NCBI GenBank assembly: GCA_001643675.2
Contig: LSRY02000002.1
Span: forward strand, 992,001-1,056,000
Direction of reading: 5' to 3'
DNA length: 64,000 nt
DNA from: Monocercomonoides exilis PA203
Lineage: Eukaryota > Protista > Preaxostyla
Positions 15,201 to 60,141 of this stretch are shown here, piece by piece. The notes beneath the pieces are model-generated. The model did not search any database, was not told the DNA's origin, and was given only the letters and a program-made list of their open reading frames with translations. Position 1 is the stretch's first letter; every line of letters starts with the position of its first letter. The translations under genes were made by a program, and so were the position numbers.

Positions 15201-15997
15201 ACAAATTCCTTCAGTTCCTTGCAAAAGAGTGGTGACGTTAGCTCTGGAGGCGGCTGATTTGGTATTAAAAATAAAACTCTCATTGGATGCACATCGGAAT
15301 GTGGCGGCTTCCCTGTTGCAAGTTCAATAGCAGTTATCCCTAATGACCATATGTCAGCCTTTGTGTCATAGCCATCAGTATTTTTTATGACTTCAGGAGC
15401 CATCCAAAAAGGCGTTCCAACAAATGTCTTTTTCTTATTCATTGTGTTTGTCAATTGCCCACTAACTCCGAAATCAGAAATTTTAACATCACCTTTTCCA
15501 GAAAGAAGTATGTTGGCTGCTTTTATATCTCTATGGATCTTTCCTTGTGAATGAAGATATTCCAAACCATGCAAAAGTTCTCTCAAAATGACAACGACAT
15601 AATTTTCTTCTAAAGGTCCAAGTTTCAAGATTTCTCCAACGGAGCCTCCTTCAAGATATTCCATTATTATCCAAAGCTTGCTTCCACTGACAAAGCTTCC
15701 ATAATAATTTGTGACATATGGACTCTTGCATTCCGAAAGTAAAGCAATCTCTCTCTGAATATCTTCAATGTCATCCTCTGCTTCTTCTAAGTCTATAACT
15801 TTAACAGCAACTATTTCATTTGTTTCTTTGTTTCTCCTACATTATTTCAAATATTTTGATCGATTTATTTGAAAAATATCAAGTAATCAAATTCTAAAAA
15901 AACAACAAGAAAAATCATACGCCTTCCACACTTTACCAAAGCTCCCTTCTCCAACAATTTCAAGAAGTTGAAAATTGTCAGTTTTTAATGAACTCAT
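12296..15997 (-). CDS. STE20-family Ser/Thr kinase, GCKIII subfamily (MST3/MST4/STK25-like), with long Ser-rich tail
   Basis: Exon 1 from ATG 15997 (MSSLKTDNFQLLEIVGEGSFGKVWKA), intron 15837-15920, then VAVKVIDLEEAEDDIEDIQREIALLS, HRDIKAANILL, DFGVSGQL, TFVGTPFWMAPEVI, HPMRVLFLIP. All catalytic motifs are intact. Confidence 0.93.
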
Positions 15998-18019: not shown

Positions 18020-19285
18020 ATGGAATTCATTCAGATTATTGATGCGAGAACGAAGTTAAAAAGAATAGAAGTTGCAAAATCCACACCCAATCTTAAGAAA
18101 TATCGGGTTAAACCTATTATTCTTCCAGTCATTCATCCCATTGAATATCAACTTCACCTATCAATTAAATAAAAGTCGTATTTGATGGAAAAAGAAAAAG
18201 AAGAAAGACAAAGAAAAATCAAAGATCTGAGAAATGGAAAAGCAAAAAAAGAAAATGAGAAGAAAAATCCCAATACTCCAGCAACATATGCTAAATGAAA
18301 AAAATTAGCAGAATTGTGCAGAATTCTTGGCTAGCAAAAAGGAAAATTTGTGTGCAAATCAATGCACATTAACTCCAGTTACAACATCTATATATTTAGC
18401 AAAGCTTCGAATCGGAATTGACATCACTTAACCACTTGGCCGAAAAGGAAAAAAAAAGGTGAATAATGAAATCTTCAACAAAATTGTGAGAGAGAAAATA
18501 AAGTCTAATCCTCTCACATCTGTAAGACAAATTGCAAAAGAATTATCCATGACTGGGTTATTATTCGGAAAAACATCTGTTCACCAAATATTATCTGAAT
18601 CCAATTTTTATCAATAAGAATTTCCTTTGTTTTCATATCAAAGAACAACAATAAAACCTTCAATATCCAAATCTGAGGAAAATAAAAAATACGAATAGAT
18701 TTTTTGTATCAGTTATTTCACCATCAAAATGATGGAGCAAAAATATTTTTATCATGGAGGAAACATCTTGGAACATCAACTGTATAAGAAGATATGGCCG
18801 AACTAAAAAGGGAGAAAAACTGCTTGAACCGCCTCCTCCAATCACTCAGTCTATTGCAGCAATAACGTCAATATCACACGATGGGATGGGCAACACTGAG
18901 CTAATTCGAGGGTCTGTCACTCATGAAATTTTCGAATCATATTTGAAAAGGTTTCTAGTGACCATTCAGGACAAAGATTCATCCGTCGTCGTGTTGGATA
19001 ATGCTTCGATACACCATGTTCATGTGGATGAAATTATTCGTGAAGCTGGGTATATTGCTTTGTACAATGTGGCATATTCACCAAATATTTAACCAGAAAG
19101 ATAATATCTTTGGAATATGGATGCAAATGGCAGAAGAAAATTTTCTAAAATGGAAAGGTGAAGATCATTTCATAACAACTCTATTGAACACTTTTAAAGA
19201 AATATTGCCTCGTGTTGTGAGAAGATCAATAATGCAAGTCGAAAACGAAGTCTGGCCTCGAGTTCTCAAAAAAATGGATAAATGA
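18020..19285 (+). pseudogene. Tc1/IS630 (DDE_3-type) transposase pseudogene
   Basis: Fragments MEETSWN..RRYGRTKKG, VVVLDNASIHH, AYSPN/NQKDNIFGIW, HTH-like SVRQIAKEL...GKTSVHQIL. Several stops and frameshifts. Collinear with copy 2. Confidence 0.85.
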
Positions 19286-19660
19286 TCATTCATTATAATT
19301 TTTTATTCATTTCGAATTGATTTTCTCGTTTTTCAATTTCACAATTTTTTTGAAGAAAGCAAAGAAGCAGATATAAATCAGTTTGTTTTTATTTTAGAGA
19401 AAAATTGTTTATGAAATGACAAAATCAAAAATAGAAAAATCACATAAAAAAATTAATTCCCTGATATGGTGGACGTTGAACATTTTCTGAAATTATAAAA
19501 AAACAAACGTAATTCCAATCAAAATCAAATTCGTCATTTTTCATTGTTCATTATCAGGAGTGAATTAAACCTTGCGAAATTTTTGCTTTCTTATTTACAT
19601 TATGAAATCAAAAAAAAAACATAGCAGAAAATTTTGACACTTCTTTATTATTTCTTTATA

Positions 19661-20086
19661 CAGTGAAGCTCGGTTATATTCACCTCGGTTGTAATCGAGA
19701 CCGCAAATAATCACATTTTTTCGTACATCAATAAATTTTGCTTTTTTTATGTGTAATTTCATTGGTTATAATCACATTAAAATCGTGAATAATCACAAAT
19801 TTTGAAAATTAATGGGTATTTTTTCTCTCTATTTTGATGTTTTTGCAAAAATGAAAGTTGTTTTTTTCCCCTTTATGATGAACAATATTTTTCATTAAAA
19901 CAATATATTTAGAAAAATCGATTCAAATGTGTGGATTTTAATTAATATTGAAAATTTTCTTTTTTTATCTTCAAAAAATTTTCAGAAAAACTTTTTAATG
20001 AAAAAGATGGTTCGGTTATTATCAAGTTCGGTTTAAATCATAAAAAATCGTGCAAAATGGATTGTGATTATAACCGAGCTTAACTG
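19661..20086. mobile_element. 426-bp MITE (Tc1/mariner-pogo type) with TA TSD
   Basis: TA|CAGTGAAGCTCGGTTATATTCAC ... GTGATTATAACCGAGCTTAACTG|TA (23-bp TIR, 2 mismatches). Internal copies of the CGGTTATAATCAC motif near 19686, 19763, 20012 and 20029. No ORF. Confidence 0.85.
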
Positions 20087-20928
20087 TATATATTTTCAAA
20101 GAATAAACATTATATAAATTAAATCAGAAAAAGTTTGAACATATATTTTTGCAGAATCATTAACAAACAAAGATTACAACAAACAAACCCAGATCGCAGG
20201 ACTAATAAACTTTTCCAGTTGCTTCAACCATTGACGATTCATCTTTTCACCAAATTTAATAAAATTTTCAAAAATTATAAAACAGTTATGAAATCAAGCA
20301 AAATCTAACTTTTGCACGCTTTTTCACGATCAATTGTATGACAAAAAGTGAAAAATGGTAAAAAACAAGATTTTTCTTCCATTTTTCTTTCCATTTAAAA
20401 GAAGATGCTTGAAAAACATTGAAAAATAGTTACAAAGTTCATTTCATTTCTAGGAATGATCAACTTTTTTTTTAAACGGACAGATCAACTTAAATTCCGG
20501 ACAAACTGAACAATATGTTCGGAAATAAAGTTGATCTTTCCAAAAATAATGTTGATAGAACCATCAATTGTATAAAAAAATTGAAATCTTAATAACAGAT
20601 AAAAACAGTGAAAAAATATCTTCATGAGCAATATTAATTTATTGGATGTTCGAACAACACAAAAAACATTTTTGATCACTCAAAACGTCACAACTGTAGA
20701 AGAATATAGTGCCAGGCCAGTCATAATGCCCTTCATTCATCTACTGGAAGACAGTATTTATTATGTTATTCGTATGAGAGCAGAATTGAAGAAAAAAGAA
20801 ACCGAAGTACAAAAAAGCGAACAAATACAGAAAGCAAATGATTCTGAAACGCGTATCAACAAAAAACCCCACACTCCAGCTACATTGGAAAAAAGAAGAA
20901 AGCTTACGAATTTGTTTCGAATTCATGG

Positions 20929-21270
20929 GGCAAAGGTGTAACTGCGTCCCTTTTGTAATTCTTGTTTTTAGACATTAGTTTTGTGATGTTTGAAATGCAA
21001 AAATTATTTAAAAACTTTTGTATGGACCGGTTTTTCGCAAAAATTTTTGTTTCTCATGAAAAAACCATTTTTAAAAATGACCCATAAATATGAGTATTTT
21101 TACAAATTTTTAATAAAATAAGATAATTATGAAATAAAAAGTGTATAAAAGGTCTTTAATTATTATATACTCTTATTATATTAATTAATTTTTGAAAAAT
21201 AAAACATTCAAAAAAAAACAAATAAATTAAAAAATTAAATATATTGATCAATCCCACAATTAAATTTTCA
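20929..21270 (+). repeat. Left terminal inverted repeat (~342 bp)
   Basis: Reverse complement of 23605-23947. By eye there are 3 mismatches in the first 11 nt, one A-run indel and one inner-end mismatch. Confidence 0.92.
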
Positions 21271-21739
21271 TTATTCAAATAATAAAAAATTAGTTTCTTT
21301 CATCGTGAATTGAATTCTCGTTTGCGAACATATAACGAATCATATATATAAATATAGTTTTATAGTGTGTGAATAATAATTATCAATATATCATTCAAAT
21401 CTTTATGAATTTTGTTTATGATTTTTAATATGAAAATTTTTGTGCAGTTTGAGGATGTTTATGTTACACAATGATGATCATGAATAAAGAAGAACAAACA
21501 AATCGTGTGAAACATTCTTTTTAATTATTAACATTGTTTTATTAAAAATTTTGACAAAACTCATAAAATATCATTTATTTTCGTTTAAATATAACGAATA
21601 TTGAAGGCTAGACTATAATCAACACAGCGGCATCAGTATAAGAAGAAGAAAAGTTTATATAGATAAAAGAAACGAATTATAAAAGACACACGCAGTTAAA
21701 TTAAAGGTCAATGCCTACACTACATAAGCTGGAAAAGAT

Positions 21740-22960
21740 ATTTTTTGAATGAAACAATATTGGATTGAAGAACAATTAAAGGAAATTCCAGTTTTATCTT
21801 CGAGAAGGCCGTCACCCACGGATGAATGCGATTTATGGAATTGATGGTTGTGAACACACAAATGATGCTGATCTTATTGATTTTGTTGCGATCCATCAGA
21901 GTGAAACGGTCATTGTGAGCAGTGGGAATGAATCGAACGGGAAGCAATGTTGAATTAACACATTTCCATATGATTCAATTAATCATGGGCTTGTGTATCT
22001 GACATCTAAATATGTGAGTCTATTGTATGTTGACGCAGAGAGCGTGATTGGAAGAGAAATAAATCCGAATGAGATGGGTTTTAAAGAAGGAGAAGGAATG
22101 GAGAAAAACACATCTCTGCGGATATTGGATGAGGGATGTCAATTGGGAGGAATAGCGAGTGAAAGAGGATCATCATTTTTCATCCCTGTCTTGGAAGAAG
22201 TGAAGAGCACAACACAGGCGAGTGGGGGCATGGACTTGAGCATTCGTGGGAAGCTGTTTCTTCCTCACAAATTGTCACAAGAGATAAGTATGAAAGATGG
22301 GGATGAAGAGGAGATTGTGAGAAAAGGGATTGAAGAAGAAGGGTTTGTGTCAGAGAATGAGATTCACTCAGTTGTTACACGTTCAGAATGGGGGAAAGTG
22401 AGAGAAGAGACAGAAGTGAGTGTGTGGATTGTGTTTGGAAAAGCTGATTCTCCTTTATCAACAGAGCCATTTATTGTGAAGAACAGAAGTGAAAGTCAGT
22501 CAAGAGGAAATGAAAGAATTGTTGAGGAAGGAAAAGAAGGAAAATCATATTTGTTGCTAATTGTTACAATCATGGCAGCTGTTCTATTAATTGTTTTGAT
22601 TGCGTCTGTGATATTGGCAGTCAGATGGAGAAAACAAAAGAGATGAACAAAGGAATTGGAAGAGATTGTGAATGACACAGTGAAAAAGGATCCGAAGGCA
22701 TTTGAGATGGTGACGATGGAGATGTCACTGGAGGAGCTGCTGAAGAGAGCAGAGAGAGCAGAGAGAGCAGAGAGGGAGGGAGAGAGAGAGAGAGAGGGAA
22801 AGAGATGGAATGAGGGAGGGAAAGGGAAAGGGAAGGCAATTTTGAGAAGAAGACAAAGATGTTGAGAAAAGAAGAAGAGGATTGAGAATATGAAGAGAGA
22901 GATAGAGACAAGCGAAGAGAAAGGGATAGAGATAGAGATAGAGAGAGAATTTGAAACTTC
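21740..22960 (+). pseudogene. Captured fragment of a receptor-pseudokinase family gene (last ectodomain module start, membrane-proximal domain, TM and juxtamembrane)
   Basis: 21790-22080 aligns with 57120-57420 (MNAIYG..C....D.DLI.FV.IH.S.T.IVSS..SNG..C). 22085-22760 aligns with 58315-58990 (NTSL..L, SSFFIPVLE, VSV.I.FG..SP.ST..FI.KN.SE, TM, LAVRWRK, EIVND..KDPKAFEMVT.EMS.EE). Contains in-frame TGA stops. Confidence 0.9.
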
Positions 22961-23604
22961 TTGAAATGGATATATTGTTCATTCTGTTATTTATTTGTTA
23001 TTTTTTAATCAAGCTATTTTTTCGTAGTTTTTTGATATTCCAAATAAGTGAATCATGGAATTAAAAGACTGGTGAATAAAATGAACACTCTTTTTTCTCA
23101 ATGAACTGATTGAGTATTTAATAAGCGATAAGGAAAAATAAATATGAAATAACTATATTTTTCCTCAATGAAATTCTTTTTAAAGGAGAAACCTTAAAAA
23201 TTCATTCGTTTATTTTTAAAAAGAAATCACAATATGAACATAAAAAAAATTATAGATAATATCAAATTGAATCGTATATCAATTAACGGAATGCTGAAAT
23301 GAACATAAAAAAGAAAAAAACAAAATATGAATAATAAAAATGAACATTTGAGAAATAGAAATATTATGCAATACTAACAAAAAAGAGGAATTAATAAATA
23401 GCATTTTCAAAACTGAATCATTTCTGAAATGAACAAGAATGATCTTTGATATTCAAAATGAAAATGCGCAGCCTGTTGTAGCGAATTCTAAAGTTAATTT
23501 TCATCCATTTGTGTGAATTATAATTAACATAAAGTGAAAGGAAGATTTGCCAGAATTTGCGCAATCTATCATGCAAAAAAGCAAAAGCAAACATCTTGAT
23601 TATG

Positions 23605-23947
23605 TGAAAATATAATTGTGGGATTGATCAATATATTTAATTTTTTAATTTATTTGTTTTTTTTTTGAATGTTTTATTTTTCAAAAATTAATTAATATAA
23701 TAAGAGTATATAATAATTAAAGACCTTTTATACACTTTTTATTTCATAATTATCTTATTTTATTAAAAATTTGTAAAAATACTCATATTTATGGGTCATT
23801 TTTAAAAATGGTTTTTTCATGAGAAACAAAAATTTTTGCGAAAAACCGGTCCATACAAAAGTTTTTAAATAATTTTTGCATTTCAAACATCACAAAACTA
23901 ATGTCTAAAAACAAGAATTACAAAAGGGACGCAGTTTCACTTATGCC
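23605..23947 (-). repeat. Right terminal inverted repeat (~343 bp)
   Basis: Partner of the left TIR; ends ...GGGACGCAGTTTCACTTATGCC. Confidence 0.92.
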
Positions 23948-26148
23948 ATTCATGGTCAAGCAAAGACATAATCGTGGTCTGCCAAAGAACGCTTGCTCAC
24001 TGCAATTACAACTGCAAGATATTCATCAAAGTTGCAAGTTGGTGTGGACATCACACAACCGTTCAAAAAAGGAGGAAGGAAATGAATAGTCGATAATGAC
24101 ACTTCAAATCAGATAGAAAGAGAAATAAAGAAACTTAACCCGCATTCAACTTTGTGAAAAGTTGCACACGAAATGAAAAATGCAGGCCATTCTATTGGGA
24201 AATCTTCGGTTCATACAATTAAGACAGAAAGAAACAGTGATACACACAAGTTTCCTTTGTTTTCTTTAAAAAGAATAACTGTGTGTCTGTCAGATGATAA
24301 TTCTGAAGAAAATTAACTGCAAAGAATACACTTTGTTGAGAAGCTTATCCAAAACCAACGGGATGGAAATGATTCTTTTTTATTGACGAGATTTCTTGGA
24401 ACATTAGCTGCATCAGAAAGAACGGATAGTCGGAAAAGGAGGATAAAGTGCTTGTTCCTCCCTTTTCCTCTGTTTCAATCTATCACGACCATCACTTCAA
24501 TCTCAATGAACGGAATGGGATATCCAGAAGTTGTTCGAGGAACAATAAACCACGAACTTTTTGAAGCATATTCGAAAAGATTCTTGCTTTCCAGAAAAAC
24601 TTTTGAATCATCAGTTGTTGTCATAGACAATTCGTCATTTAATTATGAGAACACTGATAAAATAATTACAAAATTTGGACACAAAGTTCTGTTTTATTCC
24701 GCTTTCTCTACTGATCTGAATCCTATCGAAAACATTTCTGGTTTCTGGAAAGTCAAAGTTGAAGAAAACTATTTGAAATGGGAGGATGAGTGTCATTTCA
24801 TATCAACAATGCTTCAAACTTTTCAGAAAATAAAAGCATATGAAGTTAGAAAGACAATTATGCACGTGGAAAACGATGTGTGGCCTTGGGTTTTGGACAA
24901 AAAGGATTTGGAATGAACAACTCATATTCCTTGTCCAATTTCATTTCAACTAGTTTTTTCATTTTCAATATTCACTAAATAAAGAAAAGAAATCATAATA
25001 ATCATGAGCTTTTTTAGTTTTATTTTGAAGTTAAAAAGTTGATTGAATAAAAAAGGAAAATGAAAAAAATAGCTCACAAGTGGAATAATATTTCGCTTCA
25101 AGTATTTTCATTTAAAAATTATGCACTTTTCATTGACTATTTCATATAAATAAACACAATAAAAATTGGTTCATTTTTTGACATTCGTGAAATGTTGGAA
25201 AACTTAATGTTTTTATTTCAACGATGCTTGTTTTCGGATATGAAAATCATATTTATTTTGAAATCTAAGAAAGTTAAATAAAGTTATGAGCGAAGCAATT
25301 ATTTTGTGCTTTGTTCATAAAAAGCTTGAAATTCGGTATTTTCCCCCATTTTTTCATTCATTTTTTTGCTAATTATTTTTGTTTTATGTAAATTCGAAAA
25401 GAAAAAAATTCATTTCCATATAAAAAATTGATGTCTTTCTCATTATTTCCGAAAAAAACAAAAAATTGATTTGATAAAAAAAATGCTTGTTTTTTGTTAT
25501 TCAAAAGCATGTATTTTTTTTATATTTTTATTATCAAAGTGATGATTTTTGTAATTGTCATAAACTAATAATAATTTATTTTTCATCAGTTGTAATTTTT
25601 AAAAAACAGTTTTCTTTGAGTCAAAATATTTGATTGGTTAAATAATGACTTGAAGTTTACTGTAATTAATACTCAAAATAAACTTAAAACTTCAGGAATA
25701 AATGAATTTCGAAATTTAATTATTAATTCCGAAATCGAATTATTTTTTTATCGAATTCGAATTATTAATACCGAATTTGTATTATTCTTTCACGAAGATG
25801 AATTATTTTTGGTGTTTGAGAAAAAATAAATAAATGAATAAATAAATAAATTTCTGTGACAATGAATACACATACCAGATGATAATATTGATCTAACGAA
25901 ATAATACTCTTTTTTTAATGTTGGTTCATTTTTTAAAAATTTTTAAAAAATATGGGACAAAATTTTATGCTTTATGTACAGATACTCACTGTTCTTGTTA
26001 ATTGTTAATTCTTTTTGTATTATTGAAATAAAGAAAAACAAAGATTTGATGAATATTTTGTTTATTTTATCTTGTTTTTTTTTGTAATGCACCATGAAAT
26101 ATAAATGAAAAAAACTCTTACACATATCAATTGTTCTCCAAGTGTTGT

Positions 26149-27560
26149 TTATTGCGGAAGTCCTAAATAAACTGACATTTTGTCAATGTTCATTATTCCC
26201 CATAAACCTCTCTTTGTTTGTCTTGTTTTTCTTGTATATGAAAGCGACATTGATTTGTTGTCCAATTTCACAATTTCTTTCACTTTTTTGAAGCTTTCTT
26301 CAAAGATCTGGGCTGTTAAAGGAGTTTTATGATAATCATTCACAAGTCCACTTTCTTTGAATGCAGAAAAAATGTTGATCGATGAAGAAACTTGCAGAAT
26401 GGCATTCACTGCAACCCACAAAAGTTGCTCCATACTATCATGCGTTGAACCTGATCTTACCTGTTGAATTTGAAGTTTCCAAAGAGAAAAAATTAATAAA
26501 TCCAATGACTGCAACAAGTGTTTTGTATTCGGAGGCAAAACCAAAAGCAAAATATTCTCATTATAAAGACGAGTCAATACATTATCCGATAGGTGGATTC
26601 TGCAGCCATCAAGAATCAACACTGCCTGTACGTGTTTATCTGGCAAAATCATTCTTTTAATGTTGATATGAGGAATAAAAACTTTCTCAATCCAGTTTTC
26701 AAACCACTCCTTTGTGAAATATGACGAATTTCCGACTTCTACGCAACCATGAATTCCTATTTGATAGCCTAGAGACCGAAGGGATCTTGTGTTGAACGGT
26801 TTTTGCACCAGAAAACAAGGAGGGACAAAAGTTCCATCAAGTGAAATGCAATGAAGCAATGATAACCCTTTTTATCTCCTCTGTCAACAGGCGTGTGATC
26901 AATTACACGATTCTCATTTGTTCCGACTATAAGGTTCATTTTGTATCTTCATGCGCGTGATAACCTGATTCATCAGCACAGAAGATCATGGATGAATATT
27001 TTCCACACACATATTGAACCAAATGATTTTTCCAGATGATAATGCTTTGTTCCGATATTTTCATTCTTTTTTCTTCTCTTACGCTTGAAGGAACGATCAT
27101 CAATTCCTCGCTCTGCCTTTTTATGAATGAAGAATGAAAATTGTGAGAAGGCGTTTTATGACAAACTTTCGCAACAACTGCTTTTAGCATTTTCGGTGTG
27201 ATTTTCTTTCTTTTATCTCTCAGATTTTTTTAAAATTTCCATGACTCGTTTTACTTGCTTTCGAGTCGTCAACATGTTTTTTTTCTCAATTACCTTTTTC
27301 CTTATTTATCCGGTGCTTTCCTGGCAGACAAGGCTCGGTGTGCAGTTGAGTGCCTTTGCAATTCGCACGTTAGAAGGAATTTTAACTTTTCTCATTTTGC
27401 AAGCGTAGAAGAAGGAACGAATTAATGAAACTTTCGTTTTTGAAGTGTTTCGCGACAAGAAGGTTGAAATGAAGTGGAGGTCCAATTTTGGAATAAATCC
27501 TGTAAAAACTGTTTCAAATGAAGATGTGCAAAAAGTTGAAATAACGAAAGGCATTTCCAA
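26149..27560 (-). pseudogene. pogo/Fot1-like (DDE_1) transposase pseudogene, DD35D
   Basis: IFCADESG, LHCISLDGTFVPP, FENWIEKVFIP, AVLILDGCRIH...LVLPPNTKHLLQSLDLLIF (35 residues between the 2nd and 3rd D). Broken into several ORFs by stops and frameshifts. Confidence 0.88.
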
Positions 27561-38200: not shown

Positions 38201-41200
38201 TCGACGAGTGGATGAAGATGAGAGATGCGATGAAACCGCTCATTGTCCAAGCAACGTATGGAATGGGGTCGAATTTTGGGTATTTGCTTCGGGCATTTGA
38301 GAAAGGGCGCTCAACTGGAGATATTCGCTTTACAGCATGGCTGACAGAGCTGTTTATTGCTCCAATTATTTACGTCCCAAAGATGACAATCACAATGAAG
38401 ACACAGGTTAGTGCTTTGGCGATGGAAAAAAGATACCAACAAGTTCTGAAAAACAAATATGACAAGCAAAGCGTAGAATCAAATGAACGAAATAGCAGTC
38501 AAACACAGCTATCTCCATCGAATAAAATACTTTGCAAGCCAACTTCAACACCTTTTTATCAGCAAAAACAGTCAACATTGGAAATTGCTTCACAAACAAA
38601 TGAAAACAATATTTTGTTTGATTCATTTGATAATCCTCCACAAAGCATTGTTGAAGCAAATTGGTTTGATCACCGTCCATATGATTCACAATTGACACCA
38701 GCGAAAACACCTCTTCGGATTGATTCAGCTTCATTCCTGCCAATCACCGAATATCCATATAACCACATTCAGAATCTTATTAAACTTTGGAATTCAATAA
38801 AGATATCTCATAAAGCCGAAGCAATCAAAACGGAAGTAGAAAAGGAGAACGATGAAGAGTCCGATCAAAGTTCTTTCAAAACTCTTCTTGAGGTTGCCGA
38901 GCGAAATGCAGATGAACCAACAAAAATTAATGCACGGCCTTCATCATCATCATCATCATTAGAGATTGAGCCGGCAATCAAAGACAGAGTCATTCATTCT
39001 TTGGAATCCGATGATGAGACACTGTTTGGCTTATCGCCATCACTGGAGCAGAAGCTGATGAGAGCATGCCGTGTTCTTCTGAAAATGTTCAGCACAACTG
39101 GAATGGTCCATTCAGCAATTCCAACAATGCTTACTCGCTTGGACAATCAAATCCGCTTCGTGCTGTCAAATTCAGCAGTAATTGTGTCTCAATTAATTCA
39201 AACAACACAAGCACCGCTGAGGCGTTCTACAAAATCATGGATTGATTCAAATTGTAGCAGGGCCAGGAGCAATTGTCATTTGAATTTAACAAGAGTTCTC
39301 GAAAAGTCAATCACCTCGAATGAACCTTTTGATAATGAAAACAACAGTATTACTGTAAATTCAACAAAAGAAGAAAATGACGAAATCCACAGGCCACAAA
39401 AATCTGAATCATTAGAATCAATTTGCTCAGTTCCTTTATTTATGGACAAGGCATTTGAAATGCGAATAGATCAAATGAACCGCAATGTATTTTGGGCATG
39501 TTTTCATGTTGATTGCATCAGGTCTTCGAATATTTCTCATTTATCTTCATCACCCTCTTCTTCTTCTTCTAATAATAATAATGACTACGTATCAATGCAA
39601 CTGTGCTCATTGATTACAAATTCCCCGAGATCTCCATCTCCTTCTCTTCCTGCTCTTAACGAAGTATTACCTTGGATTCAGAAAACTACTGTTGGAGATG
39701 TAAGAACGATGATAAATTTGGAAGGTTGTGGACCATTGCACGATGATGAATCAGATATTGGGCAACCTGTGAATGATAGCATAGAAAAAGAAAAGACCAA
39801 TTTAATAGGAAATACAACAACATCAACTGAGAAGCACATTAATTACCCGACTTCTGATTCTGAAACGATTAATCCTGGAACGACTGTTATTGTTGATCCT
39901 CTGTTTAATGAATCAGCTCGAATAGTTGCATCAAAAGAGAACTTTTATGTGGATGATGGATCAGCAGAACTTATCTTTGGCTGGATATTTGAAATGATGA
40001 AGAGGCTAAAAGAAAACTACATAGATGCTATTTGCGAAGAAGAAGTGATGAAAACAATGGCAGGCGAGGAACTTATTGAAAAAACGCAGCAGGCACATTC
40101 AAAGCCGAAGACAAGCAAAAATGGCAAAAAAACAAAAGAATTGGATTCTTTGTTGATTACCTCATTAAACGCACAGAATCCAGAAACTGATACACCTCTT
40201 TTCGATGATGAGAAGATACCTTCTTTGGATCAATTTTTACCTGAAACATCTTTCAGGAATGATTATGTTGAGCAATTGAAACAGATATTGCTTTCTTCTA
40301 CAGAGCCATTAACACTTCCCGAACCACTTACAGCAAATACAAACAATTCAGCTTCCGTGGAACTGCCACTTTTAGATGAAAAAGTGGTTGCTCTTTCATC
40401 AGAAGAATCTGACATTTCATCACTATCCCCTTCAGTTAGCGTGCAGATACAAACTTTTTCTGCAGGAAATGCTTCTGTTGATTCAGCGACTCATCAATCA
40501 ACAACCCCAGTTTCAACGGTTAAACACAAATCGTATGTTGCTGAGGTTCTGTCAAATGCTCAATCACACTTCGAGACAAACCTTCATTCGCAAACATTTG
40601 GAGTGGCAAAAGATGCGCGCTTGCTGCAAATGAATCATTTTCTCGAGTCAGTTAATATTATCATCTCAAATCTACTCCTCAGAACGCAAACATATCGCAA
40701 CGTACGATATCTGATGCCTCTTCTGAGAAGCGTTGCGTGGACGTGTGAAATCGACGATAGCGAACTCAATAGATATGGCAGAGAAATAATAACTTATATT
40801 TGCATTGTTTCACACAGGAAGCAAGATGTGCAAAATGTGCTGTTTGACATTGTCACTGCTGTAGAAGAAGAGGCATGGAATTGGCAAAAGGAAAAGGAAG
40901 CAGGAAAAATGAAAGCCAAAAATAAGCTTTTTGGAATGTTCAACCAGAACGCTTCTGAAGTTGCGACCGACAAACAAAGCGTTAGTCAATTGCCTGATGA
41001 GAAGGGTTTCCATTCAGTTTCTCCTCCTCCTTTTGATCAGGATTCTCTTTCAAAACATTCCCGATCTGTTTCACCTGCTCTTTCGCATTTTGCTTCTCCT
41101 TCTGCTTCTGCTTTGTCCTCGTTTGTTGGAATAGATGAATTTGATGAATTGAGAAATCATTTAATTTCTTATACTCTTCCTTCTTCATTCCAACTTGCTT

Positions 41201-50524: not shown

Positions 50525-51054
50525 TTTAAATAATTATGGTTAGTTTGAAATTTTCCCGTTTTTTCATAAAACGGGTTAATTACATAAGGAAATTCGTTTT
50601 CGTTTGTATTATAAATCAATTTTGTTTATTGGAATTCACAAAAAAATTTAAAGTGAATTTATGAATAAACATTTTCAATATCATCTTTTGTTCATTCTGT
50701 GTTCAATTCTTTCACTTTTTCAACATTATGAAAAATTGTACAACGTGATTTCTTTTTTAAGTTTTTTAAAAAAAATCAAATTTGGGGCAAAATTTTTCCG
50801 ACTGTGAAAAAAACTGAGATGTGTTCCAAACTTTTTCTACAATCATTTCATTATAAATCAACCTAAACTATGCAAATAATTACTGAAAAATTGAAAAATT
50901 GAGAAAAATATATGTTAGAGAAGAATGGAACAAAATTCATAAAATAAAATCTATTCCCATTTATCCACATGTTTTGAAAAAGAATATGGGGGGCAGGAAT
51001 TTTTCATTTCTTCATTTTTCCTGCATCCACAATTGTGTCGAGGAGCTTCCCCAC

Positions 51055-54000
51055 ATGAAAGACGCGTACAATATTGTTGCATTACTGTTACTTATTGTTG
51101 GCTGCTGTATTGGTGAAGACATTGCAGAAAGGCAATTTCAACAAAAATGGAACGGGGAGATACAGATAGGCAAGATCAACATTGAAAATGGAAAAAGAGA
51201 TAACAACAATTATTTTGGCATTTATGCAGCAAGAAATGAAAATTCAGTTGGCAATCACCTTTGCAGCATTCAAACAAGTTTGAATATCGTCAACGCCTCC
51301 TTGTGTGTGACCCATCTCAACCTCATCCCTCTCACTGGTTGTCCACTCCTCACTGCCCAACACCACTCCGCTGCCTCCATCTGCTCCTCCACTTGCACCA
51401 TCCACCCACCTTCACTCAACAACAACCACCACCACTGCCCCCTCTTCCTCTCTGCCCATGCCTCCATCGCCCTCACAAACTTCTCCCTCACCATCCCTCA
51501 ACCAGCCTTCCTCTCCTTCCCCCTCTTCTCCACCCCAAACAATCTCCTCCATAATGCCCACTCCCCAATCCCTGCTTACTTCTCCATCTCCCGCTCCTCT
51601 TTCTCCTCCTTCATCTCCCTCGTCCAGCCCTTCCTTTTTTCTCCTTCTTCCCTCTCTTCTCCATCCCCTTCTCCATCTCCATCCCTTTCCCCTTCTCCTT
51701 CATCTTCCTCATCCTCATCCTCATCCTCTTCTTTTTCTTCCCCTTCCCCTTCTCGTTCTCCTTCTATTTCCCCTTCCCCTTCCCCTTCCCCTCTCCATAT
51801 CCTTCACCAATCCCATCCCCACCTCCAAATCCACCTCAATCTCCATCTCTCAAATACCCTCTTCTCCAACATCTCCTCTCCTCAATCCCCTCTATCTCTT
51901 CAATCCCTTCCTTCGTACTCACTCAATTCATTAATCTCAACCACCTCAACCACTTCTTCCACTTCCACTTCCACCAACATCAATATCAATACTATCCCCT
52001 CCTTCTCTCTTCACTCCTCTCTCTCCATCCACTCATCCATCTTCCTCCACACCCACAACTCCATCGATGGCGCCATTCTCCCCAATCTCAACAGCCCATC
52101 CACTTCTCTCTCTGCCTTCAACACCTCTTTCCTTCACCAAACACGCACTTCGCTGAATGCTCCTATTGAACACATTGGAACTGAAACTCAAAGAGCGAAA
52201 CCTGGAAGACTGACTTCATTCGATTTGGACAGCCATAAATTTGAATGGTGTGAATGGAATGATTCGAATGTTGAATCAAACGGTGGCGCTCTTTATGTTG
52301 CATGCACAAATGCAAATCTTACAATCACTTCTTGCCACTTTAACAGTTGCCATTGCACAGGCATTGGCCAAGGTGGAGCTTTGTACTGTGGAAGTTTGTT
52401 TAAAATCAATTTTACAAAGTCTAATTTCACATATTGCTCTGCTTTACACGGAGGAGCTGCAGCGATATTGCATCCACGATCAAATTCTGTTTATTCATTT
52501 TCGGATAACAGAGTGGAAAGTTGTTCAATAACAAATTGGTGTGGAACTGGTTGGCATTTTAATGTATATGATATGACCTCAAACGGTCAATTTCTTTTAT
52601 CCAAATGCAAGTACATCGCAAATTCTGGTGGAAATGCAGCTGGTTCTTTAACGTTTCATTATCCTCCAGCCAACAAGCCAAATCAGTTTTCAATCAATGA
52701 TTGTCAGTTCATAAACAACAAATTAACTTCTTTTGCCAATTACGGCGGAGCTGGAATATACTTTGATGGAACTTACTCTTGGATGAATGGAGTAAAATTC
52801 ATCACTTTCTGCTTCTTCAATGGCAACACAGCAACAAGTGGCAGAGGGAATGATGTGTTCTTTAACGGAAGCATCATCACACAATCCCCATTCGAGAACT
52901 GTGGCTCAACAACCCCAACAAAAAGAGTTTGGAACAGCAACACAGCTGATAATGACGTGTACAATGGCTGGCTCCCCCTCATCGCTCAGAACAAAATCGT
53001 TTCTAACAGCGGAACTGATGTCGATGCCTGCGGCAGTACCCAACAAACCTCATGTGCCACTATCGAGTATGCCCTCAATGGCTTCATTTCCCTCCTCCAA
53101 AACACCTCCCTCACTCTCCTCAACTCAATATTTGTTCCAACTCAAACACTCACTTTCAGCGCAGTTGACACCAAAATCACCGGAAATGGCACAGATACCA
53201 CAATTATCTCTTCATATGGAATTCCTCAGCCTTCATCTTCCTCTTCCTCTTCACCAGATCCATCTGCCTCGTCTGCCCTCTTCCAACAGACTCAGGGCTC
53301 CCTCACAGTCTCTGCCCTCGCCATCGCACACAACTCCACAAACACAATCACTCCCATCCTCTTCCACCTCTCCGGTAACTCCCCTTCCCTCAACCTCAAC
53401 ACAACCACCATCACAGGAACAACCTCCATAACAATCACAACTCCCCTCTTCTTCCTCACTGCTGGCTCCCTCGCCCTCAACCACACAGCAATCACCAGTC
53501 TCACTCTCAACAGCCAAAGCATCTTCCACCTCACCTCCCTCACAGCACCCCTCACCCTCAACTCCTCCAACATCACCGACATCACCTCCACAGCCACTCC
53601 CACCAGCTGTGTCCTCTCCTCTGCCACCTCCCCTGCCCTCTCCCTCTCCCTCGCCAACTGCACCATCACCAGTATCAACTCAGAACAGTTGAGCCAACAA
53701 ACTGCCACAGATGGCGGGTGCATCTCATTCGCCTCATCTGCCCCTGCCAACTCGTTTTCTGTGAGTGACACCACCTTCTCCAGCTGCTGTGTGAGCGAGG
53801 ATACAAGTTTTGGAGGAAGAGGCGGCGCTCTCATGATCGAGTACAAGGATGATTCGGAAGTGTCAGAATCCTCCTTTTCCATAAACAATATCGTGTTTTC
53901 AGCAAATAAGGCCAGTGTCGGAAGAGATATGTATTTTGTGTGTGAATCATTTGTCGCTTCTGTGAAAGAGCCCATGTTCACTTTCATGAGAAGCATCACT

Positions 54001-57000
54001 GAAAAAGACAACTCAGTTGTTGGACATGACAGAACAGAAGCATTTGGTGATTGGGATGTGGATTTATTCATATTTTTCGATGGATTCTTTGCTGACACGA
54101 TATATGTGGATGAAACATCTGGAGTGGAAGAGGTGTATTGTGGATTGGAGAAGGCACCTTGTTTGAACGTGAATTATGGAATGGAACGCTTGAAGAGAAC
54201 ACAGAATAGAAAAGAGGAGATTATTGTAATTTCAAATACATTAATGACTGGATGTGTGGATGTGGGTGGAACGTGTGTTAAAGCAAAAGAGGAGACAGTT
54301 GTGCAGATTGAATGCCAAACAGAAGTAAGCGGATCTGAAGAATGTGTTCTGAAATCAGCATCGCTGACGGAAATGGAGTTCATTGGTATTGTTGTCCCCT
54401 CGAGTTTTAACAAAACAATCACATCTGTGATTGAATCGAGCAGTTCAAATGGCGAGTTGCACATGAAGAACTGTAAGATGAGTGTTGTTGGAGGAAAGGG
54501 AAGCACAATTGGATATTTCTTGATCAAATCAACAGGGAAGATGATTGAACTGGATTCTGTCACGATTTCAGATGTGAAATCAACAGTTTCGTTATTTTTA
54601 TTTTCACTTTCATCAGAAAATGTGAATGATCAGGAATACAAAGTGAAACTGTTAAATTGCACACTAGAAAGATTGGAGATTGATAGCACAGCAACAGTAG
54701 ATGAAAAGGCATCAGTGTTTGGAGACAGTGTTGGAGTTGGGATGGTTATGAATGGAAGTACAATTAACGGGGCTTTATCAGAAAAGAGCAAAGAAGGAGG
54801 AGCACTGAAAATATTGTTGAGCGAAGGAGGATATATTACAATTCAAGAGAGTTCATTTACTGGATGTGTTTGTGAGAATATGAGTGAGGGAGGAAAAGGA
54901 GGAGGGATATATCTGGATTGCAGTCTGAATGAAGAAGGATTTCAACTTTCATCGATATCGTTTTCTAGATGCAATGCAGCAATTGGGAAAAACATGTTTG
55001 TGAAGAGCAGCATTCTGGTTAATACTGTGAATACAGAGCGTTTTGCATTTGATTATTCAGATTACGTGGAGGATGGGAATGCATTTGTTGGGGAAGATGG
55101 AAAATATGGAGAAATGGATCTGCGAGTATTTCTTGTTTCTTTGAAGTGGATAGAGGTGTCTGTGTCGACTGGTGGGCATGACACATTGGGTTGTGGAAAT
55201 GAAAAATTCCCATGTGAATCAATGAAAAGTGGAATTGACCACATTGACAGAAGTGGAGCAGTTGGAGAAGAAAGGAAATTGAATGTGAAAGATGAAGGGA
55301 CAATTGAGAATATTTATTCCTTTACAGATGCACTTGTGATTGATGGAGAAGCCATTAAACACAAGCCAATTCATTTTGAATCTTCAATCAAAGGGAATTC
55401 TGCATCATCAACAAGTGTTATTTCATCAATTCAGCCACTCAGCTTCTTATATTTGAAATTGCAGATCCCAAATCAATTCACACTTGGTGTGAATTCCTTA
55501 ATCTCATCAAGCGAACATCTTCAACTTGAAAACTGTTTGTTTGAGATTCAATCAGCAACAAATACTGTTCAATACTCGTTGATAACAACAACTACTGGAA
55601 ATTGCACATTGAAAGGATGCAGTTTGACAGATTGTTCATTTATCAAATCTCCATTGATATTAGATTCTTCTGTTGTATTTGAGAGCAACAACTTTTCAAA
55701 CATTGTGAACAAGGGCAGCGGTGAAGAAGGAGGCGTTACAAAAGTGACATTGCAAGAGAATGAAGAATTGGTGATGAAATCAACAAATGCATCATCTTGT
55801 TCGCTTTCTTCAAACAATGGTAAAGGAGGATTTTTATATTTTGATTGTCAAAATTGCTTGAATGAAAAGCCATTTCTTTTAGAAAACGTTTCGTTTGTAA
55901 ACAACAAAGCAGCCATTGGAAAGAACATGTTCATTTTGGGAAAGGATTTTAATTCTTCTGTGACAAATGATTCATTCAAATTTAATTTCTTGTCAATGAT
56001 TAATGATGGAAATTTGTTTGTTGGAAGTGACAACTTTCATTCAAACAAAGATTTATTCATGTTTCTGATTCCATTCAGCTCCATTGAGATATTTATCTCA
56101 TCAATTGGATTTGATGTTGCAAGATGTGGAAGCGAGGAAGAGCCATGCTTTACAATGTGGAAAGGGATGGAAAACATGAAAAAGGAAAGTGGAAAGAAAA
56201 CAATTCAGATTGAAGGATCAACAACAATTCGAGATTCATTCAACATGTCCAATTATCAGATCAAAAAGGGTGTGAAGATGGGAGAAGAGAATGTGAAAGC
56301 AATATTGAATTTTGAAAAGGCAGTTGGAAATCAATTGGAATATTTCATGGGAAATGATATTCATCTTGAATTGACGAATATCCAACTGCAACTTGCATCT
56401 GGATTTGACAATTCAGCCAAAACGATAATTTCAAACAGAGGAGGAGATTTGGTGATAACTGAATGTTCATTCCTATCAGAGGCTGGAGTTAATAATGGAT
56501 TTGATTGTGCATTTGTGGATGTGATTGGAGGAAGTGTGGAAGTGAATGATTTGTCGATGGAGTCGTGCTATGTTGGAAACAGTATTTTTGTCATTCGTGA
56601 TTCTGGAGTCTATTGCCATTTTGTGAATATTCGAGTGGAATCGTTGAATGCAAGCAGAGGATGCATTTTATCAATCAAGAAAATTGAACCAGGATTGAAG
56701 ATTAATGAAGGAGTGAATGAAGAATGTTTAAATATTGAGATTGATAATTCATCATTTTCAGAAGTGAAGAGAAGTGACAATAGAGCGAGTATTTTGGAAT
56801 TAAAGAGTGAGAAAAAGATTTGTTTGATTGTGAATGAGAGCGACATCACAGAAGACAAAGCAGAAACAAGTGAAAAAGGAGGAACAATATTCTTCATATT
56901 GGGTGCAGCTGGATCAATGAAGATGATTGACTCAATAATCACTAATTGCAACTGCAACAACAACACAGGAAGAGGAGGAGGGGTGTATCTGGCTACAAAG

Positions 57001-60000
57001 GAAACAGGGGATTTGAACTTCACATTTGCGGGAATGAAATTCAGTTCAAATACAGCAAGAGTGGGGAATGACATTTTCATTGAATGTTACAACATCACAT
57101 CTCAAATCAATGAAACCCAATTCCGATTTGATCTTCGAGAGAATCATTATTCGCGAATTAATGCAATATATGGAAGAGATGAGTGCGATTATCCAAGCGA
57201 TACAGATCTTATTGGATTTGTGACGATTCATAAGAGTGACACGATCATTGTGAGCAGTATGAGTGGATCGAATGGGAGGAGATGTGGAACAAATACACTT
57301 CCATGCCATTCAATTGATCATGGGCTGGAACATCTGACTTCAGATTTCATGAGTGTTATGATTGTTGTTGAAGAGAGTGTGATATGTGAAGAGGTTAATT
57401 TGAAGGAAATGAGTCTGAGTTCGAAGAGCAGAGAGATGTGCAAAGTTGAAGTGAAATCAGGAATTTCAAGAACAAGAGAGGCATTGGTGATAACAACTGG
57501 AACAGTCTCAATGCTGAGAGTGAACTTTGTGTTTGAATCAAATTTCATTTCTCAACATGAATCATTGATGTCTCCAGAAGGAAGCATTCTCGAGATAATG
57601 AGTTGTTCATTCAGCTCGAAACAATCTAATGAAGAAGGAAATGCAGGTTTTGCAAACATTCCATTTCACATAATAAATATGGGAAAAGGAGAATTACAAC
57701 TTATGGAATGCACAGTGTCAAATCTCATTCTTCAAGAATCTTCATTACATTTTTCTTCACCACTTACATCAGTAATCGATTCATTAACAATTTGCAATTC
57801 AACAATAAAAACTTCTCTGATAGATATTAATGAATGCGGGCAATTAACAATCAAGGATTTCAAAACAGAAAATATCACAGTTGAAGGAAATGATGAATCA
57901 TTGATATCGTGCCTGTCAATGAAAAAGACAATTCAATTAGCAAATTGCACAATAGGCGGAGTCAGTTCAAAGACTGCAAAAGGAAAATTAATGAAAGTGG
58001 AGGATTGTTTGAATGTGAAAATGGACAGTTGCGTTTTTGATGGGAATTCAAAGGAAAGAAATAATCAGGTTTTTAATGAAAAAGGAGAGATGTGCAGATG
58101 GGAAGGATCTCTTGTGGATGTTGTGAAGAGCTCTGTTTTGATGAAAGATACAACAATCACAAATTCACCAGAAGGTGGAATAACAATGAGTGGAGGAAAT
58201 ATGAATATTGAGAAAGGAGAGTTCATTAACAACAATCCCTCAATTGAAGGATATCCATCATTGAGAAGAAATATCATCTGTTCAGATTCAGGAACATTGA
58301 ATGTGATGAGCTTGAAAGGAGGAGATGGATTGGAGAGAAATACATCACTTTGGATGTTGAATGATAGGTGCAATTTTGAAGGGATTGTTTCGGTGAGAGA
58401 TTCATCATTCTTTATTCCTGTTCTGGAGAGTGTAGAGGCAAAAGAAGAGACAGATAGAATGAAGCTGACATTCAAAGGAATGCTTCTTGTTCCATGCAAT
58501 CTGTCATTCTCAGTTGTGAAGAGGAAAGGAGAAGAGAAAGAGATTGAAAAACATGATTTTGATTCAAATGGATTCATGTCAGAAAGAGAAGTTGAAGGAA
58601 GTGTGGAAAAAGATCTTATCAGCAGTTGTGGAAATGAAATTGAGGTGAGTGTGCATATTTTGTTTGGGAATGGGGAATCTCCTTCTTCCACACAGTCATT
58701 TATTCTGAAGAACAAAAGTGAAGCAAAGATGAATGGAGATGAAAAGATTGTTGAAGGAGGAAACAAAACAGTGCCTTATTGGATTATCATTGTTGTGGTA
58801 TTTGCAGTTTTGTTTTTGATTGTTCTGATTGTATCTATTGTTCTGGCAGTTCGATGGAGAAAGGCAAAGAACGAAGCAGAAGATCTGAGAGAGATTGTGA
58901 ATGATAATATCAGAAAAGATCCAAAAGCTTTTGAGATGGTGACGACGGAGATGTCTCCTGAGGAGCAGTGGAGGAGAGCAGAAAGAGAGGCAGAGAAGAA
59001 GAATGAAGAGAGAATAAAGAAGAGAGTGTATGACAAGACACTGGAACATTCAGAATCATCAGAGCATCTACTGAGTGAAAGTGGATCAACTGAATATATC
59101 CTTGGAAGAGACTCAGACAAGATTCCTGAATGGGTGCTGGAGAAGGTTGATGATGAGGAAGAGACAAGAAAGAGATCGCCCTCGCCATCCATCTCATCCA
59201 CTTCAACTACTGATTCAGATTCAACTTTTGTTCGAGTGGAGGATCTGTGCCCAACCACCTCATCGATGTCAAACTTGGTGGATGCAATGGCCTGCTCATC
59301 ACCTTATGAAAAGCTTATTGTGGATCTGCGAGATTCTCTGTTCATGTTGCTTCATGGGCTGAATAAGACAAAGGAGATGGCAATTGGAACTCTTCAGGAG
59401 AGGGAGGTGACAGGAGCGCAGATGCTGTTCTGGGCAGCGAATGGGGCGTTGCACTCGCTTGAAGATGAGGAAGACGAACTTCCCTCTTTGCGAAACCTGA
59501 GTCCGCACATTGTGCTGCTGTCAGAACACATGGTGATCTGCATTGCCCTCCACTCCCACTGCTCCTCTTCATCTGATGATTCAGATTCATCCTCAATCTC
59601 ATCAACCACGATTGTGACATCTGCAAGTGATGATGATGATGGTGATGAAAGAGATTCTCTGCCCTCATCAGCATTTGAGGATGATGAGGAGAAGTGGAGG
59701 GAGTGTTTGAGGTGGAAGGCACCAGAGCTGGTGATGAACAGGAAGATGGGAGCAACAGAGAAGTCGGTGGCATTCTCGATTGGGATGATGCTGTGGGAGT
59801 GTCTGACACTCGAGATCCCGTTTGGAGAATACGAGGCAGAGGTGGCAGGAGATAAGATTGTGAAAGGAGAGAAGCCAGATGAGAGGGGAATTGAAGAGAG
59901 TGTGTTGAAGAATGTGGTAAATGCATGTCTGTCAGCAGAAGCATCGAAACGACCAACGCTCATCGAAGTGAAGAAAGAGCTGGTTGGACTGTTTCCTGTT

Positions 60001-60141
60001 GGGACATTTATTGTGACGATGACAGATGCAATCATTCTTGAGGAAAGCAGTGAACATGAAAAAAGCAGAGAGAGCAAAGAAAGCGAAAGGGAAGGGGAAA
60101 TGGAAGTGAATAAAATGAAAGACATGTTAGGAGATGGATGA
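51055..60141 (+). CDS. Giant single-pass receptor (~3030 aa): signal peptide, repeated beta-helix-like Cys/Gly modules, TM, C-terminal tyrosine-kinase-like pseudokinase
   Basis: MKDAYNIVALLLLIVGCCIG signal. Five G-x-(D/E/N)-x3-CG-x6-C modules, with GG(A/G)(L/I/V) and FxxNxAxxG motifs. TM YWIIIVVVFAVLFLIVLIVSIVLAVRWRK. Kinase C-lobe LRWKAPEL..TEKSVAFSIGMMLWECLTLEIPF..CLSAEASKRPTL. Confidence 0.9.
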   Translation: MKDAYNIVALLLLIVGCCIGEDIAERQFQQKWNGEIQIGKINIENGKRDNNNYFGIYAARNENSVGNHLCSIQTSLNIVNASLCVTHLNLIPLTGCPLLTAQHHSAASICSSTCTIHPPSLNNNHHHCPLFLSAHASIALTNFSLTIPQPAFLSFPLFSTPNNLLHNAHSPIPAYFSISRSSFSSFISLVQPFLFSPSSLSSPSPSPSPSLSPSPSSSSSSSSSSSFSSPSPSRSPSISPSPSPSPLHILHQSHPHLQIHLNLHLSNTLFSNISSPQSPLSLQSLPSYSLNSLISTTSTTSSTSTSTNININTIPSFSLHSSLSIHSSIFLHTHNSIDGAILPNLNSPSTSLSAFNTSFLHQTRTSLNAPIEHIGTETQRAKPGRLTSFDLDSHKFEWCEWNDSNVESNGGALYVACTNANLTITSCHFNSCHCTGIGQGGALYCGSLFKINFTKSNFTYCSALHGGAAAILHPRSNSVYSFSDNRVESCSITNWCGTGWHFNVYDMTSNGQFLLSKCKYIANSGGNAAGSLTFHYPPANKPNQFSINDCQFINNKLTSFANYGGAGIYFDGTYSWMNGVKFITFCFFNGNTATSGRGNDVFFNGSIITQSPFENCGSTTPTKRVWNSNTADNDVYNGWLPLIAQNKIVSNSGTDVDACGSTQQTSCATIEYALNGFISLLQNTSLTLLNSIFVPTQTLTFSAVDTKITGNGTDTTIISSYGIPQPSSSSSSSPDPSASSALFQQTQGSLTVSALAIAHNSTNTITPILFHLSGNSPSLNLNTTTITGTTSITITTPLFFLTAGSLALNHTAITSLTLNSQSIFHLTSLTAPLTLNSSNITDITSTATPTSCVLSSATSPALSLSLANCTITSINSEQLSQQTATDGGCISFASSAPANSFSVSDTTFSSCCVSEDTSFGGRGGALMIEYKDDSEVSESSFSINNIVFSANKASVGRDMYFVCESFVASVKEPMFTFMRSITEKDNSVVGHDRTEAFGDWDVDLFIFFDGFFADTIYVDETSGVEEVYCGLEKAPCLNVNYGMERLKRTQNRKEEIIVISNTLMTGCVDVGGTCVKAKEETVVQIECQTEVSGSEECVLKSASLTEMEFIGIVVPSSFNKTITSVIESSSSNGELHMKNCKMSVVGGKGSTIGYFLIKSTGKMIELDSVTISDVKSTVSLFLFSLSSENVNDQEYKVKLLNCTLERLEIDSTATVDEKASVFGDSVGVGMVMNGSTINGALSEKSKEGGALKILLSEGGYITIQESSFTGCVCENMSEGGKGGGIYLDCSLNEEGFQLSSISFSRCNAAIGKNMFVKSSILVNTVNTERFAFDYSDYVEDGNAFVGEDGKYGEMDLRVFLVSLKWIEVSVSTGGHDTLGCGNEKFPCESMKSGIDHIDRSGAVGEERKLNVKDEGTIENIYSFTDALVIDGEAIKHKPIHFESSIKGNSASSTSVISSIQPLSFLYLKLQIPNQFTLGVNSLISSSEHLQLENCLFEIQSATNTVQYSLITTTTGNCTLKGCSLTDCSFIKSPLILDSSVVFESNNFSNIVNKGSGEEGGVTKVTLQENEELVMKSTNASSCSLSSNNGKGGFLYFDCQNCLNEKPFLLENVSFVNNKAAIGKNMFILGKDFNSSVTNDSFKFNFLSMINDGNLFVGSDNFHSNKDLFMFLIPFSSIEIFISSIGFDVARCGSEEEPCFTMWKGMENMKKESGKKTIQIEGSTTIRDSFNMSNYQIKKGVKMGEENVKAILNFEKAVGNQLEYFMGNDIHLELTNIQLQLASGFDNSAKTIISNRGGDLVITECSFLSEAGVNNGFDCAFVDVIGGSVEVNDLSMESCYVGNSIFVIRDSGVYCHFVNIRVESLNASRGCILSIKKIEPGLKINEGVNEECLNIEIDNSSFSEVKRSDNRASILELKSEKKICLIVNESDITEDKAETSEKGGTIFFILGAAGSMKMIDSIITNCNCNNNTGRGGGVYLATKETGDLNFTFAGMKFSSNTARVGNDIFIECYNITSQINETQFRFDLRENHYSRINAIYGRDECDYPSDTDLIGFVTIHKSDTIIVSSMSGSNGRRCGTNTLPCHSIDHGLEHLTSDFMSVMIVVEESVICEEVNLKEMSLSSKSREMCKVEVKSGISRTREALVITTGTVSMLRVNFVFESNFISQHESLMSPEGSILEIMSCSFSSKQSNEEGNAGFANIPFHIINMGKGELQLMECTVSNLILQESSLHFSSPLTSVIDSLTICNSTIKTSLIDINECGQLTIKDFKTENITVEGNDESLISCLSMKKTIQLANCTIGGVSSKTAKGKLMKVEDCLNVKMDSCVFDGNSKERNNQVFNEKGEMCRWEGSLVDVVKSSVLMKDTTITNSPEGGITMSGGNMNIEKGEFINNNPSIEGYPSLRRNIICSDSGTLNVMSLKGGDGLERNTSLWMLNDRCNFEGIVSVRDSSFFIPVLESVEAKEETDRMKLTFKGMLLVPCNLSFSVVKRKGEEKEIEKHDFDSNGFMSEREVEGSVEKDLISSCGNEIEVSVHILFGNGESPSSTQSFILKNKSEAKMNGDEKIVEGGNKTVPYWIIIVVVFAVLFLIVLIVSIVLAVRWRKAKNEAEDLREIVNDNIRKDPKAFEMVTTEMSPEEQWRRAEREAEKKNEERIKKRVYDKTLEHSESSEHLLSESGSTEYILGRDSDKIPEWVLEKVDDEEETRKRSPSPSISSTSTTDSDSTFVRVEDLCPTTSSMSNLVDAMACSSPYEKLIVDLRDSLFMLLHGLNKTKEMAIGTLQEREVTGAQMLFWAANGALHSLEDEEDELPSLRNLSPHIVLLSEHMVICIALHSHCSSSSDDSDSSSISSTTIVTSASDDDDGDERDSLPSSAFEDDEEKWRECLRWKAPELVMNRKMGATEKSVAFSIGMMLWECLTLEIPFGEYEAEVAGDKIVKGEKPDERGIEESVLKNVVNACLSAEASKRPTLIEVKKELVGLFPVGTFIVTMTDAIILEESSEHEKSRESKESEREGEMEVNKMKDMLGDG

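Follow-up and report, generated by a model that had tools for sequence, protein, structure and literature searches.

A receptor-pseudokinase fragment as a probable inherited passenger of Merlin-like transposons in Monocercomonoides exilis

How does a piece of a host surface-receptor gene come to lie between the ends of a DNA transposon that has no transposase of its own? The question is raised by a 64,000-nucleotide stretch of the Monocercomonoides exilis PA203 genome (GenBank assembly GCA_001643675.2, contig LSRY02000002.1, positions 992,001 to 1,056,000; hereafter the window), in which a 3019-bp unit at 20929-23947 carries sequence of the receptor-pseudokinase family. We consider it quite probable that this unit is a non-autonomous cut-and-paste Merlin with an inherited receptor passenger that was later overwritten patch by patch.

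The unit and its Merlin relatives

The two arms of the unit, which begin with GGCA, are 98.5% identical over 343 columns and form long terminal inverted repeats (TIRs; coordinates in Table 1). They are flanked by an exact 8-bp target site duplication (TSD), ATTCATGG, that does not extend to 9 bp; at the local composition, an exact 8-mer match is expected by chance at ~2e-5. Excising the unit together with one TSD restores one 1266-bp Tc1-like frame, which is colinear with a paralog at 18020-19279. Four internal stops persist in the rejoined frame, so this Tc1 copy is dead. No transposase was found inside 20929-23947.

The genome was searched over 82.3 Mb in 101 contigs (cited here as C and a number), with only the best candidates scored and donor searches covering those scored candidates. 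At least 41 matches were obtained for the TIR, most of them paired and facing inward, and a 22-base terminal pattern had 51, compared to none for a control pattern. Sixteen whole elements (3.0-13.9 kb) and most of a 17th were read; an exact 8-bp TSD was found in nine of the 16 and one with a single mismatch in two. Between the same termini, 10 of the 17 copies encode a transposase of the DDE_Tnp_IS1595 type (PF12762; E 7.5e-21; scores of 75 and 72 bits, the cut-off being 27) that has the DDE residues and two paired CxxC motifs in its N-terminal part. Its frames are uninterrupted on C13 and C61, and the ratio of replacement to silent divergence (dN/dS) between copies is 0.08-0.36. On these features, the family is assigned to the Merlin (IS1595-like) superfamily. 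Identity with the Mutator-like elements (MULEs) was rejected because the IS1595 type was the sole transposase between the termini and the TSDs are 8 bp, not 9-11 bp, long; a hAT or P identity was rejected because of the transposase type. The common termini and the TSD length suggest that a Merlin transposase acting in trans mobilised the window unit. A preliminary description, which was made from the window's letters, had reported a 3019-bp unit with ~342-bp TIRs starting GGC, an exact 8-bp TSD and no transposase, which splits a Tc1 transposase whose frame is rejoined on removal, and had preferred Merlin/IS1595 to a MULE; our results agree with each of these points. When the transposase was used to search for relatives in other oxymonads, the matches were a single M. 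exilis protein and Merlin/IS1595 proteins that are distant (at most 36%).

Termini related by small changes gave ~200 matches on many contigs, including many 2.4-kb pairs, and were also seen on 7-11.5-kb elements with Merlin transposases (C7:1625522, C16:1369301, C74:69871 and C40:833747). A non-autonomous family member with its own 8-bp TSD (C25:1204732-1208630) is nested between the receptor and the transposase of a transposase-bearing member.

Receptor-pseudokinase sequence was present in all 17 copies that were read. The transposase-bearing copies (10/10) have one order on one strand: TIR, 5'-truncated receptor, transposase. The longest cargo begins near residue 1157 of the 3080-residue host frame, and hence the 5' end of the gene is absent from the cargo. 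Nine elements align through the junction between receptor and transposase, whereas the match to host genes ends ~200-225 bp beyond the stop, which points to one single old capture that took in the receptor 3' flank. In five copies, the transposase is followed by another, decayed passenger, which has relatives (66-68%) on C9 and C17. An example lies at C61:445199-447299; a piece of the same passenger adjoins more distant transposases on C16 and C6, and its uptake is therefore older than the subfamily split.

Tyrosine-kinase-like proteins are the largest M. exilis gene family (PMC6759080). In the receptor family, a membrane span is followed by a kinase C-lobe without HRD and DFG: neither motif was found in the last 450 residues of any of 120 host receptor proteins, and Pfam covers positions 161-258 of the kinase profile only. 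A Pfam search of the family gave no match to a beta-helix ectodomain. In the window unit, the receptor homology extends over ~1.0 kb (21738-22736) and ends just past the membrane span, with three stops in its first block and one directly after the span. The ~1.2 kb that had been estimated before was thus right as to the homology and too long as to its extent, which is without kinase sequence. More copies of the left cargo block lie at C11:1188422-1188858 (92%) and C80:218168-218673 (87%), where no terminal match is listed nearby; they are possibly truncated elements.

Recombination, overwriting and mirror arms

The closest relative of the unit, on C29, is 98.3% identical over 2.7 kb and has the same cargo between other flanks, which signifies that cargo and ends moved together. 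Its right TIR contains, at element positions ~2700-3095, a ~390-bp near-perfect palindromic insertion with TA flanks, in that TIR only. The first 1.84 kb of the window unit is colinear with the left arms of the C80, C13, C40 and two C25 elements (80-83%), and a ~890-bp in-frame deletion is common to these five, C29 and the window unit, i.e., to seven copies. From the juxtamembrane codons onward, the unit matches the right end of the transposase-less lineage. Because its left part matches the deletion lineage and its right part the transposase-less lineage, the structure marks the unit as a recombinant of two relatives, apparently a deletion derivative that was joined in juxtamembrane sequence that both parents carried.

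Overwriting is seen in C13 and C25:1445505: their TIRs, their transposases and the greater part of the ectodomain piece are 99-100% identical, but a block of ~900 bp is only 79-82% identical. In this block, the silent divergence (dS) is 1.5 and dN/dS is 0.09, compared to a dS of 0.016 between the transposases; its source was therefore a gene that had been evolving under selection. In a tree built from 16 cargo rows and 38 host rows of the membrane-proximal segment (the host rows being the nearest matches and a spread of others; the segment is missing from the C12 copy), cargo monophyly was rejected (approximately unbiased test, p 0.0024) and nine label changes were required. Moreover, a 290-bp kinase tract of the C61 copy matches host genes on C10 at 96% identity and has no match in other elements. 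As a control, three segments were compared in 118 host proteins: the pairwise identities were uncorrelated (Spearman 0.00-0.05), and the nearest neighbour agreed between segments in about one in ten. Since the host genes are equally mosaic, the patchwork is a property of the receptor family, i.e., family-wide conversion, and not of the transposon. On the same ground, an element-specific diversification was rejected.

These results confirm the earlier claims that the cargo belongs to the receptor-pseudokinase family, by its homology to the host genes, and that it is mobile with the element, by the C29 sister. Other claims of the preliminary description did not stand. Capture by the non-autonomous element was not borne out, as the receptor piece appears to have been fixed in a transposase-bearing ancestor and inherited with the deletion common to seven copies. 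A single donor paralog was not found, in keeping with patchwise overwriting, and the window's own receptor gene (50899..60141) was rejected as the donor by sequence comparison and the tree. Domain shuffling back into host genes is unsupported: the one lineage-specific segment that was tested, the cargo after the deletion, was found at 93% or more only inside elements, with a best other match of 87% (40 of 223 candidates scored). The suggested small-RNA control of the receptor family is likewise unsupported. The element was also rejected as an engine of receptor-family expansion, since long free-standing frames make up nearly all of the top family matches and the 5' end of the gene is in none of the elements.

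In nine of the ten transposase-bearing elements, the left end is repeated in inverted form at the other end, over 1583-3747 bp. Arm identity is 96.6-99.9% within an element and mostly 80-90% between elements. A 450-bp miniature inverted-repeat transposable element (MITE) with TA flanks sits at the matching position in both arms of the outer C25 element, and hence one arm was copied from the other after the MITE had inserted. The copying route was likely strand invasion between the two TIRs during repair. Convergent, equally scoring pairs of receptor tails were also observed (C10:1444153/1447128, C38:642866/652914, C8:1496949/1499885, C13:1246552/1257819 and C58:2060326/2075169), mostly one long and one short frame. 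No scored Merlin transposase match lies between the members of these five pairs, and inverted duplication therefore occurs outside Merlin elements too.

The course of events was probably as follows. An ancestral Merlin would have acquired, upstream of its transposase, two-thirds of a receptor-pseudokinase gene from the 3' side, together with ~200 bp of the 3' flank. In its transposase-bearing descendants, as their structure shows, one end was copied onto the other; the resulting inverted arms measure 1.6-3.7 kb and their identity is maintained. Sequence of host paralogs replaced blocks of the cargo, probably by ectopic gene conversion as between host genes. The structure of the window unit further shows that the left 1.75 kb of the deletion lineage was joined to the right end of the transposase-less lineage at the common juxtamembrane coding sequence. 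Finally, a Merlin transposase in trans may have inserted the product into the Tc1 copy, leaving the 8-bp TSD.

Alternative explanations and known systems

Several points weigh against this account. The structural counts are based on 17 of roughly 25-30 copies, with ~10 others known by coordinates only. Five of the 16 copies, among them the C29 sister, have no TSD, which indicates that the ends were also moved by recombination. The single capture is read from shared junctions without outgroup rooting. The right subterminal segment of the unit (22918-23604) had no convincing match in other parts of elements, only a 67% inverted pair on C1. Finally, no donor of the swapped C25 block was found near 100% (best 86%, with 40 of 1028 candidates scored).

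It is rather unlikely, in our opinion, that the Merlin lineage works as a shuttle for the receptor family, which takes tracts from one chromosomal paralog cluster, moves them and donates them to others, and whose mirror arms give hairpin RNA against the family's conserved tail. A retention of the cargo for the use of the element or the host, either as a truncated membrane protein or through hairpin RNA that the mirror arms would form and that would silence or tune the receptor family, is also improbable. The cargo is in every copy that was read, but the gene's 5' end is in none; open frames are long in some copies (916, 1280 and 696 codons), but overwriting by intact host genes would be expected to produce them. 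The deletion common to seven copies keeps the frame, whereas stops and frameshifts are frequent in the cargo. Between the window and the C29 copies, there are 4 silent and 8 replacement changes and a stop, which are too few to tell from neutrality. Arms of up to 3.7 kb could give double-stranded RNA, and captured fragments in maize serve as sources of small interfering RNA (PMC13317346). No sign of cargo function was found, and the cargo appears to be a passenger.

A classic Pack element, in which the transposase was first lost from the non-autonomous copies and each of them then acquired its own receptor fragment by gap filling, seems quite unlikely. The window unit is a non-autonomous TIR element with a TSD, and its host gene fragment, from a family that is mostly free-standing, moves with it. 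However, neither a parental gene (best host match at most 87% among the scored hits) nor a capture by the non-autonomous element was found. The cargo of the non-autonomous copies does group with different host genes (inner C25 with P0104, C49 with P0091 and C58 with P0114), but all five aligned copies share the juxtamembrane break point and one right segment. Separate captures are unlikely because they would not repeat both junctions. Additionally, the left part of the window unit is colinear with transposase-bearing copies and has the deletion in common with them. An artefact of nanopore fold-back or of multi-mapped polishing in a very large family is highly improbable: the assembly does combine nanopore reads with repeated Pilon polishing (PMC8767320) and several arms are 100% identical, but exact TSDs lie on both sides at nine unrelated sites, the left and right arms differ in the same way in the identical C13 and C40 copies, the junctions recur across contigs, and polishing may smooth arm identity but cannot create structure.

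As autonomous TIR elements with a fixed host-derived passenger, the inherited-passenger Merlins resemble the KAONASHI MULEs. In the latter, a ULP protease gene was captured as the passenger, which is complete and evolves under selection within the element, whereas the M. exilis passenger is without evidence of either. Transporter insertion sequences (IS) are frequent in the bacterial IS1595 family, and their passengers are usually whole genes. An IS1595-type transposase with an adjoining passenger is common to them and to our elements (PMC3129680, citing Siguier et al. 2009), but the M. exilis passenger is a truncated, decaying fragment of a eukaryotic host gene. Pack elements are known in several TIR superfamilies, i.e., plant Pack-MULE, Pack-CACTA and other Pack-TYPE elements (PMC8903248, PMC6379663), and animal Pack-TIRs and Ssk-FB4 (PMC8277862). 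The window unit shares with Pack-TYPE elements the movement of a host gene fragment by a non-autonomous TIR element, and with Ssk-FB4 the long TIRs and the membrane-protein cargo (PMC8277862). In contrast, Pack-TYPE elements belong to other superfamilies, and the M. exilis cargo was already in a transposase-bearing element and was later overwritten by paralogs. Galileo/Foldback elements of Drosophila have TIRs that are more than 99% identical within a copy and ~7% apart between copies (PMC2775673). These long TIRs with high within-copy identity recall the M. exilis arms, which are on a larger scale; however, Galileo is a member of the P superfamily, has a 7-bp TSD and TIRs of at most 1.2 kb of its own sequence, whereas the M. 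exilis arms hold host coding sequence.

The part of Lopes et al. (2021) at hand describes seven Monocercomonoides Merlin families with TIRs mostly of 23-29 bp, mentions no cargo, and gives a published Merlin TIR range of 24-462 bp (PMC8101967). By that account, the GG termini, the 8-bp TSD, the DDE_Tnp_IS1595 transposase and a 340-bp TIR are all within what is published for Merlins, whereas arms of 1.6-3.7 kb exceed the range. The terminus of the window unit was not found among those families when the supplements, some of them incomplete, were searched as text.

Features of the window and meaning for the receptor family

The features of the unit and its surroundings are collected in Table 1.

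Table 1. Features of the window (positions within the 64,000 nucleotides).
Feature	Position	Strand	Basis or remark
Left 8-bp TSD	20921..20928	.	sequence match with right TSD
Left TIR, 342 bp, starts GGCA	20929..21270	+	arm alignment; at least 41 genome matches
Left subterminal region, common to whole family	21271..21590	+	81% to positions 1-660 of long C61 copy
Cargo block 1, receptor ectodomain piece, three in-frame stops	21738..22082	+	close copies C29 (98%), C11 (92%), C80 (87%); host paralogs at most 81%
Junction of ~890-bp in-frame deletion	22068..22082	+	common to C29, C80, C13, C40, two C25 copies
Cargo block 2: membrane-proximal ectodomain, hydrophobic span (~22551-22622), TGA 22644-22646, start of cytoplasmic linker; without kinase part	22068..22736	+	
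GA-rich simple sequence; break point of receptor homology in five aligned non-autonomous copies	22737..22918	+	
Right subterminal segment	22918..23604	+	seven family copies (six read, all transposase-less; 78-99%)
Right TIR, 343 bp	23605..23947	-	arm alignment
Right 8-bp TSD	23948..23955	.	sequence match with left TSD
Interrupted Tc1-type transposase pseudogene, 5' part	20624..20928	+	
Interrupted Tc1-type transposase pseudogene, 3' part	23956..24916	+	DDE_3 E 6e-6; four internal stops
Free-standing full-length receptor-pseudokinase family member, 3080-codon frame	50899..60141	+	95% to MONOS_10916; not donor of the unit's cargo
Canonical protein kinase	12296-15664	-	
Second decayed Tc1-type transposase	18020-19279	+	31-45% to interrupted one; same strand, 2.6 kb upstream
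MITE of ~430 bp, 27-bp inverted ends starting CAGT, TA flanks (Tc1/pogo type)	19657-20090		resembles MITE in both arms of outer C25 element
Piece of pogo-type DDE_1 transposase	26149-26859	-	
PSME4/Blm10-like gene	33031-41811	+	
Methionyl-tRNA synthetase	42993-44177	-	
Cyclin	46895-47584	+	

A literature search, with most subscription journals outside its reach, found no paper on cargo-carrying Merlins, and Merlin is not mentioned in PMC8277862 or PMC13317346. The receptor family has been reported to overlap unclassified repeats (PMC8767320). The elements described here account for only a small part of this family, with ~25-30 copies compared to more than 1000 candidate loci. With the inherited passenger, the carriage of host genes would reach the Merlin superfamily and a metamonad protist. 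No description was found of its form: a passenger that is built into a transposase-bearing element and into multi-kb terminal arms. Moreover, near-identical copies that differ only in swapped blocks may record gene conversion in the largest M. exilis gene family in a neutral and datable way.

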